From NCBI GenBank assembly GCA_965644295.1, contig CBFFRP010000123.1, forward strand, positions 434,001-498,000: 64,000 nucleotides of DNA, read 5' to 3'. The translations under genes and the position numbers were made by a program. The notes under the pieces were generated by a model. That model ran no database searches. It was not told where the DNA came from and worked only from the letters and a program-made list of their open reading frames with translations. This stretch comes from Paraphysomonas bandaiensis. Its lineage: Eukaryota; Protista; Chrysophyceae. Shown in pieces: positions 16,877 to 64,000 of this stretch (position 1 is its first letter; each line of letters starts with the position of its first letter).

Positions 16877-17286
16877 TTTTCGTGGTGTTCTGGGGAATAA
16901 GTATCGGAGATATTTCTCTGGGAAACTAACGTGAGCCGCATAATATATAGTCAGCCGATACTGTTCTGCCCTCTCATAGCCGAATGCTTGTGTGGTACAA
17001 GCGACACTAATAAGTGTCACTTGTGCAAACGTCTTTGGGCATTGACGAATAAACAGGCATCCGGGTATAGGGCCACCTCAAGGGCATCCGGAGTATTTGG
17101 ATGACTGCTGAAGTCAAGCATCCGGGCTGTTCACCTTAAGGACTCAAAAATCCTGAAGTCATCAGATGCCTGGTATATATATCAACATTCTGCTTGCTCA
17201 CTGCGTTTGCTTTGAGTGATAGAGCAAAAGTGGTTGCACCTTGTGGTGCATGCAGTGACGCTCAAGCAGCTTTCGTAGCGTTAAGC
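16877..17286 (+). mobile_element. Ribozyme-headed non-autonomous retroposon, copy A (5'-truncated within the ribozyme)
   Basis: Colinear with 18060-18432 and 63585-63197. Starts at TTTTCGTGGTG (L3) and ends with the family 3' end GCAGCTTTCGTAGCGTTAA. Confidence 0.8.
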
Positions 17287-18059
17287 AGCAGGATATCAGA
17301 GTTAAGCATTTCTACGATATATATCTTAAACGCCTTTTCTAATAAAATAGTATATTTAACCACGGACAATAATAAAAATACTATTTTGTCCGACGCTCAT
17401 AATTTTGAAACGAGGGCCAAAAGCTCGAGTTGTAAAAAAACAAGGGACGATACTTCTTATCCCTAGGTTAAATAAAATAGCTTGTTGTCCTCATTATATT
17501 GAAAACTTAATATTAGATTGTATAATAGCAATTAATAGCTAGTTTTCTGTGAAGGAAGAAATAGGAATCCCTGATTAACACCAAGAAAACAAATGTTTCA
17601 AATCAATCATGGTATGTATTTCGAATCTTAGGGAATAGCAATTACACACTAGATCAACTCAAAACAATAAACTCCAAATTTCTATATATAACAGCTACAA
17701 CAAATGACTCCTGCCACAGAATGATACAAAGGGGATAGCAACTGTGAGGTGTTGAAATTCGAACATAATTATGATGATGAATTTAAACAGTTGTAGTCAC
17801 ACGAGAGGCTTCTTACTTCCTTAATTTTAGTATTAAAATCACATTTATATATAACACGCTTAACCTCTGCTAATCTGATTGAATGATGTGTCTATGATAT
17901 GAGAAACACAATATCCTGATAAGCACAATGTGACCAATCCCTGAAACGACAGAGGATACCACTGCCCTTATAGCCACCTCTACAGAATCAGATATGGCAG
18001 TTAAAACTCTCCTGTCATATGCTTGAAGTTGATTCGAAGTTCAAGTTATGAAGATAATA

Positions 18060-18147
18060 CCCTCAACAAAGTCGGACTCGCACCTTTTCGTGGTGTTCTG
18101 GGGGATAAGTACCGGAGAGATTCTCTCTGGGAAACTAACGTGAGCCG
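18060..18147 (+). ncRNA. Candidate HDV-like (Pr77/L1Tc-type) self-cleaving ribozyme
   Basis: P1 CCCTCAAC / GTT(CT)GGGGG; P2 CGG(A)CTCGC / GTGAGCCG; P3 ACC/GGT with L3 TTTTCGT; P4 CCGGAGAG/CTCTCTGG with AGTA/GAA loop-E-like flanks; J4/2 CTAAC with putative catalytic C at 18135. Confidence 0.7.
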
Positions 18148-18432
18148 CATAATATAGTCAGCAGATACTGTTCTGCCCACTCATAGCCGAATGCTTGTGT
18201 GGTACAAGGGACACCAATAAGTGTCACTTGTGTCGACGTCTTTGGGCCCTGACGAATAAGCAGGCATCAGGGAATGGGCCCACCTCAAGGGCATCCGGGA
18301 CAGGACACCGGGGTATAGGGCTGCCTGCTGAAGTCAAGCATCCGGGATGTTCACCTGAAGAACTCAGAGCGGAAGTGGTCGCACCTTGGTGCTTGCGGCG
18401 ACGCACAAGCAGCTTCCGTAGCGTTAAATAGT
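18060..18432 (+). mobile_element. Ribozyme-headed non-autonomous retroposon, copy B (intact 5' end, internally deleted)
   Basis: First 88 nt identical to the reverse complement of 63498-63585. Ends GCAGCTTCCGTAGCGTTAAATAGTAG. Confidence 0.85.
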
Positions 18433-18785
18433 AGGATAAAGAAAGTGTTCTACTAGTTTGTTTAGCATTCATCTAGCTACTAAGTTGGTGCAGGTTCTTA
18501 ACGCCTATTGCTAATAATAAGACTTTCAATATAGAGGTGGCTTGCACTGACATATTTATGACTTTTTACAGCAGACGAAGGATGGAAGACGACTTGGAGT
18601 GTTTAATGATCTGCTTTCGAAAGTTGGCTCGTCACTGCGGTTTCTCTAGTATAGTGTACTCTAAATAATTTCACATACATATGACAGTGGACGTCCTCCG
18701 GAGTAACCACACATATTGACACTGAAGGACTACACACTTGTGGGGAGCTATCACACTTACTTTTAAAGACGCACAATCCTGACGA

Positions 18786-31551: not shown

Positions 31552-31721
31552 ATACTTACCTGTTCGCGGTTTGGGGCCGATCAAGCAAAGCCCTGGCCCC
31601 CCTTTGAGCAGGCCATTGCACTGGCGCAAGCCTGAGGTGCTGTAATTTGGGGTGAACATCCTTCGGGGTGTCTCAGCGGAATAATTTTTGACAGCTGGAG
31701 ACTGCGCTTGTCGCGTCTCCT
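31552..31721 (+). ncRNA. U1: U1 spliceosomal snRNA
   Basis: 5' ATACTTACCTG; loop I GATCAAGCAAAG; loop II CATTGCACT (U1A site); Sm site ATAATTTTTG (31681); terminal stem GGAGAC(T)GCG/CGCGTCTCC. Confidence 0.93.
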
Positions 31722-32677
31722 TCACACACATACATACATTTATACATATATACATACATTCATGCAAGATACATTTTTACATATCCCACACAATATGAGT
31801 GAATCTTTCAGTTGAATTACTTTAATAGAGAATTGATGATACCGCATTTCGTAGTGAAGGTATTAATCAGTTCATGAAATGGGAACTCTCTGTATCGCAA
31901 TCTCAGATATGACTATGGATTTTAGTGTACTGCATAGATTTTTGATGTGATACGAGATTACATGGATGTCTGTCGTAACATTTAGAGCAGTAATAAAAGT
32001 ATGTTGACTAAGTACTGCCAGTATGCTGCAGTTTGTAATATAAGCGAGTTGGGTTGTTCGTTCAATAATTATTATACCTATGCCTAATGTGTTATCATGC
32101 TATCCAAACGCAATCCTTGCATGCTGCGTATACGCAGCACATGGAGCAATTATCACTCCATTATTATCTCACACGCTAATGTTTTGTTCGTCTATGCATA
32201 ACGCTTACATGTTGTAGTGATAGTCGAAGTAGTGCTAGATGCAGAGTGCCGTGAAGTTAAGATTATATACACAATGGCTTCTTACTCTAGTGTGTAGTGT
32301 GTATTCCGATCAATAACTTTTCACGTCTTACTGCGCGTAGCAAGGTGCTTATGTCAAATACCAAAGTACCAGGAAAATATTATGCGCAATACCCAGGTGC
32401 CTGAAATATACATTTAAATTTCGGTAATCGGCACTCTTTCCACAAACATAACATATAAACTGAATATCTGTATGGTAAATTGTAGCTTGGAAAAGCACAC
32501 ATGTGTTACATATTTGCTGTCGAAGTGCTTACTCTTACATAACAGCTCCATGGAAAGAAACTGAAAAGTACGCGCATGAAATACTTGCTACGAACAACTA
32601 CAAAAATGACTGGGCTAGTATCCAATTACAGAGCCAGTACCAACTGAAATGCAGACACGCAATACCATACTCTCCCT

Positions 32678-54789: not shown

Positions 54790-57700
54790 ATGGCAGGGCT
54801 ACGCTCAGCGCAAGTAGACTCGCTGGATCGTCATAGAAGTCCGCTAGCAACAGAGGTATATGAGGGTGCGGATAGCTCTGACATACTTTAATGTGTTACG
54901 CGGCAGATATATAGCAGCGCCAGGACGTACTTGCGAAAAAACAATGAGCATGTCCTTCATAATAATTCGTCTACTGCTAATGGCACACCCAATGAGTATG
55001 AAAATCAAGAAAAGACTAATGTCTTATCGAGGTGAGCAGTTTTCTTTGTCATTGTGATGTTGAGCTGGTGTAATAGGGTCGAACATCACAATGAATTATA
55101 CGAGGTATCGAGTTCGAGTTATCCTAGTGGGAAAAAATCGTGCAAAGATAAGCACAAGAAAACAGGACGCAAAAGGACTACCTCAGCGGAATCCGCGGAT
55201 GGGCTTGGAATTCCCCAGCCTATACCGGCTGAGAGGTCTCGAAGCCACACTGACTGTATCGTGCCATTAGGACGACTGGAGCGCCATTCGGACTCTTCTA
55301 GGGATTACTCTTCCGATAAAGATGAGCTGTCATCTGCGGGGTACCGTTCTAACTCGGAGAGGGCGCTGTTGCAGCAAGCTGTCCAGCAATCCGCTGGTCG
55401 TTTGATGTCGTTATCCTTGGGGCGGGGTCAAGCTATACCACATCCTCAGCAAGCGACATCGTCGACTTCTAATGCATCTGTTAATGCGAGTGGCAGCTCC
55501 CTTCCAATGACTGTTAGCTCGCCTCCTCTTTCAGGTGACGGTATGGAGGACCCATTTTCAAGGGAGGGTGACGAAGCGTCTATTGAGACATATATAGGCC
55601 AGACGTTTCCTCGTGTGAAAGATATTGACAAAGAAGTCGTGGCGGCATCTACTCAAGTGACATCAGTAGAGAAACGACATAGTCGATCCCAACCTTTGCC
55701 GTCCAAAGTTGCTGACGAATCCCATTCACAATATTCTTTAGCACATATATCAGGTGACTTTGCCAACCATACACCTCCATATGAATATAAAGGACGAAAG
55801 TCTTTCAAAAACAAGAAAATGCTAAAGTCTGCGAGCGCCTCGGTTGTAGGTAGTACAGAGAATGTGAAGGCGCAAGACAGAATCCGCCGCAACAGCGGAA
55901 GTGGGAATCTCGTCACTCCCCCTCGTCGAAGCCACAACATTAGCGGTAAAGAGCCGGCGACTGCTCCTAGAGAGAGGATATCCAACAGGGTCCATAGAGC
56001 TGGGTCGTCGAACAGCCGAAGTAATAGTCCTATGACTTTAGGCAAGGTCAATAGCCGTGGCAACAGTCGTAGCAGTAGCCCATTAGTAGGAGTTAGTCGG
56101 GCGATCAAGTGTACAATGCAACCGAACAGTCGGAGCAATAGCCCCCAACTGTCCTCGAGCAGAGCCCCCACAGCGGAGACTACCATATCTACCCCTACTA
56201 CTGAGCAGATCGTACGGACGTCAGTGGCGCAAGACACCGCTCAAGGTGTGACCGACCGTATGAGAACACCTGATACAGCTAAGGCTACTAGTCTGGATGC
56301 TGTCCTACGTGAACGGCTTCAGGAAGCGAAGGCGGAAAACAGAAAGAATACCAGTGACGGTGCGACAATGTATCAATTCTCCCTGTGGAAGGGGGTAAAA
56401 CGCAGAGACGTACTTGTTGAACAAAGTCCGGATCGTATAGTTGAAGGATCATCTGTACATATGGAGCAGTCGGTAGCCCCTCCAAAGAAGTCCTGTCGCT
56501 TGCGGGGAGTACGTGCTGCTCGCGAGGTATACGAGGAGGCCATTGATGCTACCCCCAGTATGCGCCCAATGCGTGTGAAACCCTTGAGTCATATATCTGT
56601 TAGTGATGGAGTAACTTCAGGAGTAGTGCGCAAGGAAAAGACATATGGTGCGGCGGATGTGTCGAGCCCGCCGAATGACTTCACTCCGTGGAAGCAGAGT
56701 CGTGATTATGATAGAGGATCATTTGAGACAGAAGATAGCGACACGGATGTTGATGACGAGGTACTCAGTGATGAAGTAGTGGCGGACACCAATAGTATTG
56801 GCGGGGGACGAGCGCTTGCTTTTCGTAGCATGGTTGGGAGTTGCAAGATTCACGAGTCCTCAGTGGGCTCTACAGCTGAGAGCATACAGACAGAACGCGG
56901 GGTTGGGGGGTTGCCGCACAATACCCACAGCATGGACTCAGTGTGTAGTAACAACTATCTCAGTGATGATTTCGAGGAGATCGAGGATGAGGCAGCGATA
57001 TTAGGCATCGCAGTGGACGACTATAGTCTGGCCTCGGACGTGGTCGAAGAAGCAGATGAGTGTGACGATTCAATGTACAGCAACGCTGGTGATATATCCA
57101 GTAAACCCACCAACAAGCTAACAGAATCGGACACGTCAACAGAAATTCAGAATTCTGCTAGCGAGCTTAGACTTCTGGTGGCTAGTAATTTAGAAGCAAC
57201 AGACCAGGCTGCTTTTTCTCCCGTTGCAGAATATACTGTCGACGGACCTGTACCTGGACCACCGCCAATACGAAAAGGAGATAAACTCATGCGGTTATTT
57301 GACGATGTTCCAGGTGATGGCAAGGATGTAACTATGTCCATCTCTTCCTTGCCGACTGAGAGATCTCCAATGAGAGAAAGTGGAAAAGGCTCATCAGGGA
57401 GAATGGAAGAAAGACGAAAGCAATTACCCACAACATCTCTCTCATCGCAGAAGCCAGCGGTAAAGAAAGGCAAGGGGAAGAAGCAGAAAGCTGTGAATGT
57501 ACTGAATGAGAGCCTACACAAGCACAGAGACCACAAGCACAGAGACCAGGCTTCTTCGCCCACTCTCTCTGAGGTATCAGATATGGACAACTATCAAACA
57601 GAGGATCCAAGCAAATCGGAGTCTAGGTCTTCTTTGCTACACTCCGCCAAATCAACGGGGTCCCCGTTATCTCACCTTCCCCAACATGCGCAGGAGGAAG

Positions 57701-58681
57701 TATATGTTATCCAAGACTTTGAATGGAAGAAGGGGGTGGATATAATCGGGGAGGGAACATTTGGCCAGGTGTTTAAGGGCATGAACTGCGCTACCGGTGA
57801 ACTGTTGGCTGTGAAACAAATAAGTCTTGTAGATGGCACTGATGAAGAAGTCTCTAGTTTACGGCGGGAGATTGATCTTATGCAGAATCTTTCGCACCCT
57901 AATATAGTTAGATATGTTGGCACATCGGTATCATCGCGTCACCTGTTTATAGTTCTAGAGTATGTTCCTGGCGGGTGTGTGGCAGGGATGCTATCACAGT
58001 TTGGAGCGTTTTCGGAGGTATTAATAAGGTAGGACTAGGGAACAGCATTGTGCATTGTTTAAGTTGACACTGCAGACGGCTGGTGAGCCAAATAATTCAA
58101 GGTGTCGATTACTTGCACCAGAAAGGGATCGTGCACAGGGATGTGAAGGGGGCTAATGTGTTGGTCACTGATGCAGGTGTTGCGAAATTGGCTGATTTCG
58201 GGTGCTCCAAACAACTGGCTGGACTCTGCACTACTTCTCTGGAGGAGAGTATGCGGACGATTCGTGGGTCAGTGCCTTGGATGGCACCAGAGGTAATTAA
58301 ACAAAATGGACATGGGAGATCGGCGGATATATGGAGTGTGGGAGCGACAATCATCGAAATGGGTATACTTATACCATCTACATGCTGTGACTTATTAATT
58401 GTTGTATGTAGCCACTGCCAAGCACCCGTGGCCAGAGTTTTCGAATAACTTAGCTGCACTGTTCCATGTCGCCACTTCGAAACACCCTCCCCCTGTACCT
58501 AGCCACTTAAGTGAGGACTGTGCAGGTTTCATTAACAGGTACGGGTGAATAGGTAATAATATTGTGTGTGACATTTCTCTGTAGGTGCATGAAAATAGAA
58601 CAACAAGAAAGAGCAACGGCCAGGGAGCTATTGACTGACCCATTTCTACTAGCATTGATAGTAACAAGTTCGAACCCCTGA
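54790..58681 (+). CDS. STE11/NPK1-like MAP kinase kinase kinase with long disordered N-terminus, multi-exon
   Basis: WKKG..IGEGTFGQV, LAVKQI, HPNIVRYVG, LEYVPGG, HRDVKGANVL, DFG, GSVPWMAPE, DIWSVG, KHPWPEF. Confidence 0.88.
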
Positions 58682-59197
58682 GTTACTTAATCTCATTCAT
58701 GTCATGCTCTACTTTATTTCAACGCCATAAAATACGTGTGAATATATATTATATGATATGTGTGCATGTGCGATTTGCTTGTTAATAATGTGTCCGCTAA
58801 TTCATGATAGGCTGTAATGTAATACTTCGAACATAGTATGAGGACGAGTTTAATAATATTACGACAACAGATATGTTACATAGTAACTTTTTATTGACCC
58901 ACAATAATTTTTAGGGAGCCTACGGTACTGTGCTAGAGAATTCTGGGTGTTTTAATGAGCGCTGTTAGTTATTGTCCTCAGTGGATTAGAATATTAGATA
59001 CACTAAAAATATCATTTATATTTATATATTTAATATAGTTGTGTTGAACCACATTTCGATAAGGGGGCGAGTAACGGAAATATGTTAGCTACCTACTAAG
59101 ATCCTAGTAGTAAATATCTAATTATTTGCAACAGGGATGCAAGAGTCAGCACTAATGTAGCATTGCAATTTGCAATTTAGCTTAACTCTAATATACT

Positions 59198-59612
59198 ACT
59201 ATTTAATGCTACGAAAGCTGCTTGTGCGTTACGCGTTACCGCAAGCACCAAGGTGCAACCACGTTTTGTTCTATAACTCAAAACAAACGCAGTGAGCAAG
59301 CAGAATGTTTATACACCTGACATCCGCTTGACTTCAGCAAGCAGCCCAATACCCCGGATGCCCTTAAGGTGGGCCTATATCCGGATGCTTGACTTCAGTG
59401 GGCAGCCCAATACCCCGGATGCCCTTGAGGTGGGCCGTGGGCCCATTCCCGGATGCCTGTTATTCATCAAAAGACCCAGAGACGTCTGCACAAGTGAAAC
59501 TTATTTGTCTCCCTTGTACCACACAAGCATTCAGAACAATATCTGCTGACTATATATGTGGCTCGGAGAAATATCTTAAGTACTTATCCCAGAAAACACC
59601 ACAAAAATGCGA
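59198..59612 (-). mobile_element. Ribozyme-headed retroposon, copy D (degraded 5' end, internal tandem duplication)
   Basis: Reverse complement of the family sequence. The ~60-bp unit GCTTGACTTCAG..CCCAATACCCCGGATGCCCTT.AGGTGGGCC occurs twice. TAG-like tail. Confidence 0.8.
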
Positions 59613-61042: not shown

Positions 61043-62381
61043 GATTAGTGAATGACGATGAACGATATTGATTATTATATTAATTATTGAGTGTTGAGAA
61101 ATTGGTCTCAAGGTCAAAACACCACTCCGACTTACCACGGTGAAAACAACTGACGGACACATCCTCACAACACCGCAAGACATTCATGAAGGCATTAATG
61201 CGCACTTCCGTGAACATCATGCCAAACCTCCTGGACTTGACCCTGTAGCACAACAGCTCCAGGATGACCCTACATGGTGGAAATCCCTTCTTGATCCGGG
61301 CTCAGCGACATGCCAGGAACCACTCCACCCCCGCTCGAAAATACCTCTTCCCCTGCAACTGGGGTTACGACGGGCCCTTTGTACCAAGACCAATCCGGCC
61401 ATGGCAGCCACACTCAAATCTACTCTTGCAAAAGACATCACCCAGGATGAATTCTACTGCACACTTCACTCTCTCTCCTTCAACCGCGCGCCTGGACCCT
61501 CAATGGTCTCCTCCAACATGGTCAAATCCTGGCCACCGGTAGTTCAGCGAGAGGCTTACATCCTCACCAGATCTCTCTGGAAACATAAACATGTGCCCAT
61601 TTGGTGGAGAGACAGGGTAATGTCTCCCATTCTCAAGAAACCAGGAGAATCCTCCCTCACTAATCTCCGACCGATTGGTCTGCTTGAAGTCAGTAGGAAA
61701 ATATTAACAAGGATAACCACTCATAGAATTCTTACCGTATGGGAGGAACAGAAAGTTTTGCATCCGTCCCAGCATGGTTATCGCTGGAGGAACGGGACGG
61801 ACACAGCGATACTAAGGGTACTCGCGGCTGCAGAAGAAGCAAGACGAAAAGGCGACCAGCATATATGTACACTCTGGGACTTCAAGAAGGCCTTCGACTC
61901 AATTGCGCCTAACCTCATGCGTCTCGCGTGGGCACGACTGGGCGTTCCGGACGATGTAGTTGACTGGTTTGGCAACTTAGATGCCGGCGGTCTAACATTT
62001 CCCTGGACACCATTCATGGCAAACAACATAGAGCCACGTTCTCTCCTTGACCTCCTGTCCGCAGACGGCCACTTCATTGCACTATTCAGTCTGGGTTTCG
62101 AAGCCGAAAGGGGTATCACCCAAGGGGGCACAGAATCCACATGCGCCTGGGTGGCACTCTACGACATCCTTCTCACGTGGCTGGACATTGAACTGTCAAC
62201 AACGAGTCCAACGTTACCAACTATTCAACTCACGACTCCGACTACCGGCGAAATAAAGATCTCCTTCGCGGATGATCTTAACACAATAGCTAAATCCATA
62301 CACGCTGCCCAACTCATTGCCCAACAAATATCTGCGTTCTGCGTACTTTCGGGAATGGAACTCTCTATCCCCAAAGTAATT

Positions 62382-63585
62382 GAAAATCTGATTATTAACG
62401 CGCAAGCTTGTGCGTTGCCGCGACCAACCTAACAACTCGCGCGACACTATGCATAACATGACTCTCATCTAGTTACTATTGCATGCACCGACAAGTGCTC
62501 AACTATACAACACGATTTAGTTAGCTACATGGGCATACGACGAGTTGCGTGTTTAAGCCGGATCATACGCTCCTGCCCAATCTACTTGTCCTAACACAAA
62601 CAACTTGCGGTCGGTGTCTTCGGCATATGTCTCCTGTATATGCGGCAGATCTTTAGGGCCCTCTTCAAGGTGGTGTTCACAGCAGCAGGTGTAGTCTGGA
62701 AGGGAGAATAAAGTAGCTCTATAGCGCCGGGTCCTCCCACGGTCACGAAGCGGTCTCACTGGTGCAATTTTGCACACTGACGCATGAAACAGACATCTAC
62801 CAAAATCTGTTACAAATTCAAGCTGACTCCAATGTCTTCCCTCCATTGTGTGCACTCGTCCAGCACATGCATCCACCTTGCACTCTTCTCCCGAGTGACT
62901 TACACTAGTAGGAAACCGTGCACCTTCCCCGCTCGGATGAAAACCTACTAAGCAAGAATAACATAAAAGCACCACAAATGTACCTGACACTGCTTGGAGA
63001 ACAGTGCCAGAGCCTTGATATAATCTCAATGACCTGGGTCAGGAGAAACCAAGACTAGGCAGTAGACGTGTGAGAAGACATGACAGGTCTAATCACATCA
63101 TTGCCATTGCCATGCATCCATGAGGAAAGTTTGACGCATTACCTCGGTCATTGGCCACACAGATACCGAATAATGTGAACTCATACTCAGCATCAATCAC
63201 TCAAAGCAAACGCAGGGAGCAAGCAGAATGTTGATATACCTGACATCTGCTGACTTCAGGTGTTTTGAGTTCTTAAGGTGAACATCCCGGATGCTTAACT
63301 TCAGCAGGCAGCCCAATACCCCGGTTACCCTTCTGGTGGGCCCTGTCCCGGATGCCCTTGAGGTGGGCCCATTCCCGGATGCCTGTTTATTCGTCAGGGC
63401 CCAAAGACGTCTACACAAGTGACACTTATTAGTGTCCCTTGTACCACACAAGCATTTGGCTATGAGTGGGCAGAACAATATCTGCTGACTATGTTTGCGG
63501 CTCACGTTAGTTTCCCAGAGAGAATCTCTCCGGTACTTATCCCCCAGAACACCACGAAAAGGTGCGAGTCCGACTTTGTTGAGGG
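62382..63585 (-). mobile_element. Ribozyme-headed retroposon, copy E (1,204 bp, with ~750-bp extra internal segment), with 16-bp TSD
   Basis: Flanked by the perfect direct repeat TATCCCCAAAGTAATT (62366-62381 and 63586-63601). 5' end CCCTCAAC abuts the TSD. 3' end GCGGCAACGCACAAGC..GCGTTAATA resembles the other copies. Confidence 0.88.
63498..63585 (-). ncRNA. Second identical copy of the candidate HDV-like ribozyme
   Basis: 88/88 identical by eye to 18060-18147. Its +1 C coincides with the TSD boundary. Confidence 0.7.
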
Positions 63586-64000
63586 TATCCCCAAAGTAAT
63601 TTGCACAGTGTTTCCGATCCTACAAGATTCCAACAAGTCCTCCGACCCCATTGGCTACATCATTCTCTACGACTGGTCGTGGCGTCCACACCCAGTCCCT
63701 ATCCAAACATCACTAGAGTCGATACATTACCTCGGAGCAGACCTTCCTCTCACAATCACAGACAAGGCCTCCCATGACTGGTGTCTAAAATACCTGAAAG
63801 TCGTGACCACACACCTAGGGATTAAACAGGCCTCAGCCGGCTGTAAAGTCATGGTTATCGAGACCCAAATCATACCGACTTTGCTCTATAGAGCCACCAA
63901 AGCTTCATGGCCGCTACACTGGTACAGAGAAATTGACGCTGCTTGCGCAACCCTCTACAGAAAGGCCCTCAGTCTAGGCCCTGGATACCCCACGGAACTG

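Follow-up and report, generated by a model that had tools for sequence, protein, structure and literature searches.

Two repeats on opposite strands of one contig begin with the same 88 nt, and the question raised by this locus is what such a constant head does at the start of elements that otherwise differ. The window, i.e., the whole 64-kb stretch of DNA analysed here, has been the subject of an earlier reading, made from its letters, in which the head was taken for a self-cleaving ribozyme resembling the hepatitis delta virus (HDV) ribozyme and of the Pr77 type. HDV-like ribozymes are well documented at the 5′ ends of R2, L1Tc and a small number of other retrotransposons, and the Pr77 signature has so far been treated as a trypanosomatid hallmark. 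Here, we find that the head forms the 5′ part of a highly abundant non-coding retroposon lineage comprising type A elements, type B elements and variants. From its sequence and that of its relatives, the head is probably (we estimate about 0.7) an HDV-like ribozyme of the Pr77/L1TcRz type that would define the 5′ end of the element RNA.

The head and the retroposons that carry it

Direct comparison of the two heads confirmed the claimed identity of the opposite-strand copies over all 88 nt (Table 1). The first 25 nt of the head match twice in the window, compared with zero matches expected from 100 shuffles. The two copies, denoted A and B, had also been described as diverging after nt 88. This point needs correction, as they remain ~95% identical up to nt ~320, with one 14-nt indel within the shared part; the divergence itself is real, since beyond nt ~320 the copies are unrelated and split into type A (~510 nt) and type B (1207 nt). 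Copy A carries internal deletions and has no clear target-site duplication (TSD). Copy B ends with ...AATCAGATTTTCAAT and is flanked by the TSD given in Table 1. The earlier list of copies was short by two, namely the 5′-truncated and the old decayed copy of Table 1.

Table 1. Features of the window and elements of the predicted fold. Base numbers with a letter prefix below 100 count from the first base of the head.
Feature	Position	Strand	Remarks
Predicted HDV-like (Pr77-type) ribozyme head, copy A	18060–18147	+	88 nt
Predicted ribozyme head, copy B	63498–63585	-	88 nt; identical to copy A head
Type A non-coding retroposon (copy A)	18060–18531	+	older copy; 88% identical to young copy
Type B non-coding retroposon (copy B)	62379–63585	-	1207 nt; 99.5% identical to other copies
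TSD of copy B	62366–62378	-	TACTTTGGGGATA; second copy at 63586–63598
Older 5′-truncated copy	16877–17295	+	begins at head position 26
Old decayed copy	59192–59612	-	~70–71% identity; begins at about head position 19
P1	18060–18067 with 18095–18104	+	C1-G45 to A6-U40; U38 and C39 unpaired; A7-U37, C8-G36
P2	18073–18081 with 18140–18147	+	G21-U82, C20-G83, U19-A84, C18-G85, A17 bulged, G16-C86, G15-C87, C14-G88
P3 (ACC/GGT)	18082–18084 with 18092–18094	+	A23-U35, C24-G34, C25-G33
L3	18085–18091	+	UUUUCGU (TTTTCGT)
P1.1	U18087 with A18105	+	U28-A46
P4	18112–18130	+	8 bp, C53-G71 to G60-C64
J4/2	first base C18135	+	C76-U-A-A, within CTAAC
Predicted catalytic cytosine (C75 equivalent)	18135; in copy B 63510	+; copy B -	in J4/2 CUAA
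LINE ORF interrupted by copy B	61098–64000	+	reverse transcriptase domain PF00078; pieces 61098–62365 and 63586–64000
U1 snRNA	31552–31722	+	canonical, 166 nt; Rfam RF00003, 79.8 bits
Protein kinase gene	55054–58448	+	Pkinase N-lobe 55054–58032, C-lobe 58083–58448

When the first 320 nt were used to query the assembly to which the window belongs (62.6 Mb in 669 contigs), 2,494 preliminary candidates were obtained; 40 of them were scored, with 91–92% identity. At least 786 heads were counted in the genome (first 36 nt, at most 2 mismatches), compared with none for the reversed control. Copies of type B are 99.3–99.5% alike, and TSDs of 10–16 bp abut C1 in 40 of 44 distinct copies. The expectation that the 5′ ends of the family cluster at CCCTCAAC holds for all of the ~50 copies examined, which begin there, have unrelated upstream flanks and are directly abutted by their TSDs. 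Types A and B end in a related tail, ...GCGGCRACGCACAAGC...TAATAAT-AGA-TTTCAAT, and carry no poly(A).

Pfam assigned no family to the 157-aa ORF of type B, nor did it reveal any recognisable ORF in the elements. No matches to Pol III A or B boxes were found in the elements, and no Rfam match to tRNA, 7SL or 5S overlaps them in the window scan. T4 runs occur inside the elements, one of them in L3. The dispersed copies, the fixed ends, the TSDs of variable length, the 5′ truncations and the lack of coding capacity therefore identify the elements as non-autonomous retroposons that spread through target-primed reverse transcription; they are not SINEs of the classical Pol III kind. Accordingly, the SINE-type family of the original prediction stands with respect to its exact 5′ end, its TSDs and its non-coding nature, but not as a SINE of the Pol III type.

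Two older copies (16877–17295 in the window and L013:509-1025) combine a B-like middle segment with an A-type tail, so the families evolved by module swapping behind a constant head.

Some observations concern other repeats and the sites of insertion. At L036:2046-2297 (G000:C428), and also in L045, a 191-nt type A tail is preceded by a different 61-nt stretch. This combination has 239 candidates in the genome, all starting at the same base, and may represent a third short family that has the same tail and no ribozyme head. The 61-nt stretch was considered as a LINE UTR and rejected, as it is another short repeat and no link was found; likewise, a '220-aa ORF' adjoining a tail proved to be a SINE copy read in antisense. 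Furthermore, 2 of the 44 copies (L005 and L034, with TSDs CGTAGTGTTCT and TTCGTGGTGATCTGG, respectively) are inserted in L3/P1 of the head of another copy, which could be due to chance or to a preferred target.

Predicted fold and covarying relatives

All pairings listed in the original prediction are present in the sequence by inspection (P1, P2, P3, L3, P4 and J4/2). A nested double pseudoknot can be written on the head, in which P1 crosses P2, P3 lies inside both, P4 lies inside P2 and P1.1 sits between L3 and J1/4. The strands of P1 are CCCTCAAC and GTT[CT]GGGGG, and those of P2 are CGG[A]CTCGC and GTGAGCCG. The cytosine of J4/2 stands in a CNRA context as in HDV, and the column of C18135 is nearly invariant in both alignments described below (A3 and A5). 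In comparison with all 40 relatives, P1 of the window head is irregular, as it has either 8 bp interrupted by a 2-nt bulge or no more than 6 bp in a row. The relatives possess a plain 7-bp P1 and a 3-nt J1/2, whereas J1/2 is longer in the window head and its P2 contains a bulged A. For P1 of the window head, cmsearch gave two near-equal alignments, each with insertions. The nested minimum free energy (MFE) fold is no better than that of shuffled sequences (z = -0.36), a null result that is expected for a pseudoknot.

Two head subfamilies are abundant in the genome, one of 88 nt with the P4 sequence CCGGAGAG-AUU-CUCUCUGG (281 copies) and one of 87 nt with CCGGAGA-UAUU-UCUCCGG (225 copies). P4 thus differs between them while the stem is kept. 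The core is intact in both recently active families, including the CGU of L3, the P3 pairs, C-U-A-A in J4/2 and the P1.1 pair.

The L1TcRz/Pr77 ribozyme is known from trypanosomatid elements of the L1Tc/ingi clade (L1Tc, NARTc, L1Tco, RIME and SIDER1/2; PMC3185411, PMC4035085, PMC3383444, PMC4748587). For comparison with the window head, nt ~27–77 of L1Tc are given by primer sequences (PMC3185411), and the head sequences of L1Tco, LmSIDER2A, TvSIDER1 and ingi are found in the supplement of PMC4035085. The Pr77 features listed in the original prediction (the CCCT start, CACC-N7-GGTG, GGG, AGTAC and GAAGCTAA) are indeed present in the published sequences. Co-transcriptional cleavage in vitro has been published for L1Tco(78)Rz, LmSIDER2A(81)Rz and TvSIDER1(94)Rz. 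The trypanosomatid sequences were compared by inspection and by a shared descriptor, CACCTYWWCGTGG-N(9-17)-AGTAC-N(10-40)-GGAARYYAA. This single descriptor fits the window head in a scan and, by inspection, both L1Tco(78)Rz and LmSIDER2A(81)Rz, which are active in vitro, in support of the claimed likeness to Pr77 of L1Tc. In the window it matches the two heads only, with 0 matches expected from 100 shuffles. Approximately 27 of 31 core positions are common to the window head and the trypanosomatid sequences, with fixed spacing and at the 5′ end of a retroposon.

A descriptor scan of metagenome contigs, with P1, P2, P4 and P1.1 left unconstrained, yielded 104 stretches (L091–L194) with 45 distinct cores. 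Chance hits account for a few of these matches, among them L115, L167, L189 and L190. The remaining stretches form at least 10 families with wholly different P1, P2 and P4, which are nevertheless complementary. Examples are CTCGGTC/GACCGGG with GAGCTCA/TGAGCTC, CCCCAGC/GCTGGGG, CCTTCCC/GGGAAGG with GGGTGTC/GACACCC, and GGGCGAC/GTCGCCT. In alignment A3, which contains 20 metagenome sequences picked for good P1 and P2 and excludes the window, 95.8% of the cells are paired in the full HDV topology with both pseudoknots, compared with 69% after shuffling and 40–47% after sliding. Compensatory change was observed in 19 of 23 pairs, and the covariation score is 0.726 against 0.204. Alignment A5, which is model-based and covers 43 hits, unfiltered rows and the window heads among them, still gave 90.3% paired cells and a covariation score of 0.676 against 0.19. 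P1.1 joins L3 position 3 to the base directly following P1; 37 rows of A5 have U-A here and 4 have A-U, and by eye the trypanosomatid sequences have A-U. The U-A pair that had been guessed for P1.1 is therefore borne out by a U-A/A-U swap across families.

A covariance model of P1, P3 and P4 (R1) was built from A3 without window sequence. R1 matches both window heads over all 82 positions with 39 bits and an E-value of ~5e-8, which is not fully independent because the conserved core was fixed by the collecting descriptor; the independent parts of the match are the helices and the spacing. Elsewhere in the window, R1 finds only the truncated copy. Among the true members, the window head scores lowest (39 bits versus 51–96), owing to its irregular P1, the bulged A of P2 and the longer J1/2. 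Over the whole genome, the best match reaches 47 bits, and among the 150 R1 candidates scored the matches are 82–90 nt long and all belong to the same lineage. These 150 candidates include neither a class with a regular P1 nor a LINE with this head, the best model matches all being of the SINE lineage.

The search with HDV models suggested in the original prediction gave no support. Rfam 15 reports no HDV-type match in the window at the gathering threshold, and the HDV, CPEB3 and drz models (RF00094, RF00622, RF01787, RF01788 and RF02682) give none at E <= 10 around the head. Since Rfam likewise returns nothing at E <= 1 for 12 metagenome relatives, which do covary, this negative result is weak and the class is absent from the library.

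Covariation among the copies of the genome, also put forward earlier as a check, offered nothing usable, and 19 copies mutated at P1 position 5 are mostly uncompensated. One copy (L009) appeared compensatory and was rejected, as compensation arises only in a shifted register. The near absence of informative covariation in the genome is explained by the near-identity of the heads and by the neutral decay of dead copies. In individual decayed copies, pairs are lost and no compensating change is seen; given the neutral decay of insertions, this is no evidence against the fold, and pair-breaking substitutions, which had been named as a refutation, do not constitute a valid test. The comparison of head and body between families A and B gave 0 versus 5 fixed differences, which is not significant in a sample biased to perfect heads.

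The metagenome families share the core, the topology and the single-pair P1.1 with the window head. They differ from it in their regular 7-bp P1, their 3-nt J1/2 and an L3 that is mostly UCUACGU. At least one of them, a family of 54 loci with P1 CTCGGTC, resembles the window element in being a short dispersed repeat whose first base is base 1 of P1, where the information falls from 2.0 to ~0.1 bit. Eukaryotic genes (ERGIC, HET domain) lie on contigs that belong to other families.

Two of these families show further peculiarities. The 54-locus repeat occurs in soil-type metagenomes and varies mainly by C>T and G>A, a RIP-like pattern. The family with P1 CCCCAGC lies on long contigs (L097, L100, L104, L112, L113, L120, L124, L160 and L170) and is probably fungal, as one contig bears an ORF with a HET domain. 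Its members have a conserved GC-rich hairpin just upstream that overlaps the 5′ strand of P1 and could serve as a switch between alternative folds.

Expression, proposed mobilization and alternative readings

The window contains a canonical U1 snRNA, and therefore the host is not a kinetoplastid, in line with the original prediction. The element was found in marine or seawater metagenomes and metatranscriptomes from 13 studies; at least 3 studies have it in contigs assembled from poly(A) metatranscriptomes. One contig of a poly(A) metatranscriptome joins 62365 to 63586 and thus represents the empty site of copy B. Some contigs from RNA runs extend from the head into upstream flanks (loose ends at 63585), which means that uncleaved transcripts or DNA carry-over exist.

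Copy B interrupts the otherwise intact ORF of a LINE, whose frame is open across the excised copy. This LINE has at least 30 copies at 98–99% amino-acid identity, with subfamilies at ~74% and ~46% and open frames of up to 3021 aa. It is context for copy B, not an established partner.

The protein kinase gene of the window spans at least two ORFs (Table 1). This split is consistent with an intron.

The repeat family, its ends and TSDs, its fit to a covariation-supported class and its presence in RNA libraries are observed, and we infer the cleavage, the polymerase and the identity of the LINE in the following model. As the elements have no Pol III boxes, they would be transcribed by Pol II, either from an internal promoter or as a portion of a longer transcript, be it a host RNA or a read-through product. 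The head would then fold into the nested double pseudoknot with P1, P1.1, P2, P3 and P4, in which C18135 of J4/2 would act as the general acid/base, and the RNA would cut itself immediately 5′ of C18060. The first base of the released RNA would thereby be the first base of the element. A LINE reverse transcriptase may recognise the conserved 3′ tail (...GCGGCRACGCACAAGC...TAATAAT-AGA-TTTCAAT), and target-primed reverse transcription would copy the RNA to new sites, creating the 10–16 bp duplications.

An unlikely alternative, yet the one that deserves most attention, is that the head is mainly or only an internal Pol II promoter, with C1 as the transcription start and the fold as a relic or as a back-up for read-through. 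For L1Tc, the same 77 nt have been published as a Pol II promoter with an essential DPE, CGTG, at +25 to +28. The window head contains CGTG at +30 to +33 and the metagenome relatives contain it at +26 to +29, an internal promoter would account for the continued mobility of hundreds of copies at whatever site they inserted, and the irregular P1 might mean weak catalysis. On the other hand, a DNA promoter needs no covariation of P1, P2, P4 and P1.1, yet the class covaries, and both abundant subfamilies have preserved the P4 stem. In addition, the usual initiator is a pyrimidine-purine step, which a C start after arbitrary flanks does not match. Because both functions coexist in L1Tc, the promoter seems more a complement of the ribozyme than an alternative to it.

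We consider it improbable that the head is a conserved, ribozyme-derived RNA structure that lacks catalysis and serves, e.g., as a binding site for the LINE protein or as an export or stability element. The irregular P1 and P2 and the weakest score with R1 would agree with such a role, as would the published finding that several trypanosomatid Pr77 copies with an adequate fold are inactive in vitro. However, all positions of the catalytic core are intact in both recently active families, and the 5′ end of the elements lies exactly at the predicted scissile bond. Finally, a chance resemblance, i.e., a conserved repeat start that happens to be foldable, is hardly credible in spite of the MFE result and the missing Rfam match, given the absence of descriptor matches in 100 shuffles, the R1 match over the full model and the core positions in common with trypanosomatids at a retroposon 5′ end.

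With an HDV-like ribozyme as the preferred reading of the head, a Pr77-class member would stand at the start of young elements flanked by TSDs, numbering roughly a thousand or more, in a marine protist of stramenopile type, with strongly covarying relatives in soil, litter, moss and other metagenomes. This host and the metagenome occurrence suggest an old module, or one mobile among eukaryotes, that has been missed by current family libraries. The relatives also provide a natural series on what the HDV-like core tolerates, such as a regular or a bulged P1 and U-A or A-U at P1.1. Moreover, the locus bears on how a non-coding element that has no Pol III promoter can acquire a fixed 5′ end.

A wider reading can be proposed tentatively, about as readily doubted as believed. 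Pr77 might be one branch of a pan-eukaryotic HDV-like class missing from Rfam, and act as a portable 5′-end module that was captured in a stramenopile by non-coding elements borrowing the tails of ribozyme-less LINEs. The same proposal would define the class by a C-start P1, a single U-A or A-U pair as P1.1 and the core CACC-UYWWCGU-GGU...AGUAC...GGAAR-C-Y-AA. If true, this would constitute a promoter-less, ribozyme-headed alternative to Pol III SINEs, from which several families (A, B and hybrids) arose by tail swap.

Comparison with known ribozyme-headed elements

The HDV, CPEB3 and drz ribozymes are like the window head in their nested double pseudoknot and in the catalytic cytosine in J4/2. 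R2 and HDV have a P1 starting with G and a P1.1 of two G-C base pairs, whereas P1 of the window head starts with C and P1.1 is a single pair.

Among mobile elements, R2 sets its 5′ end by self-cleavage out of a co-transcript, and R2 SIDEs, e.g., R2Dwi_SIDE, combine an HDV-like ribozyme at the 5′ end with the LINE 3′ end recognised by the reverse transcriptase (PMC3414825). The window elements resemble R2 SIDEs in being non-autonomous, with a ribozyme head that is predicted and a LINE-recognised 3′ end that is proposed here. However, R2 is site-specific in 28S rDNA and co-transcribed by Pol I, while the window elements are dispersed with variable TSDs. Furthermore, R2 SIDEs are internal deletions of their own LINE, whereas the window head is seen on no LINE.

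The closest likeness is to L1TcRz. Both start with CCCT, have a P1 with C as its first base and a run of G as its partner strand, and possess a single-pair P1.1, which is one base pair in L1TcRz as well (PMC3185411). Also in common are P3 ACC/GGU, a 7-nt L3 ending in CGU, C-Y-A-A in J4/2, the AGUAC...GGAAR frame around P4 and CGTG at about 25–33 nt from the start. In contrast to L1TcRz, the window head has UUUUCGU as its L3 and the reversed pair U-A as its P1.1, together with a 2-nt bulge in P1, a bulged A in P2 and a longer J1/2. At the level of the elements, the Pr77-like sequence of the window forms the exact 5′ end of retroposons, as in trypanosomatids, where these are LINE-dependent and include short non-coding ones. 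The window elements end with ...TTTCAAT without poly(A), unlike the L1Tc/ingi elements with their poly(A) tail. The L1Tc/ingi LINE clade is of the APE-RT-RNase H type and trypanosomatid, whereas the host of the window is a marine non-kinetoplastid. In the literature, of which coverage was incomplete, no paper was found that links HDV-like ribozymes with stramenopiles. The strategy as such is already known from L1Tc/NARTc/SIDER and from R2 SIDEs (PMC3414825). New in this case are the host lineage, a link to Pr77 at the sequence level outside trypanosomatids, a larger family of covarying relatives and the exchange of tails between types A and B.
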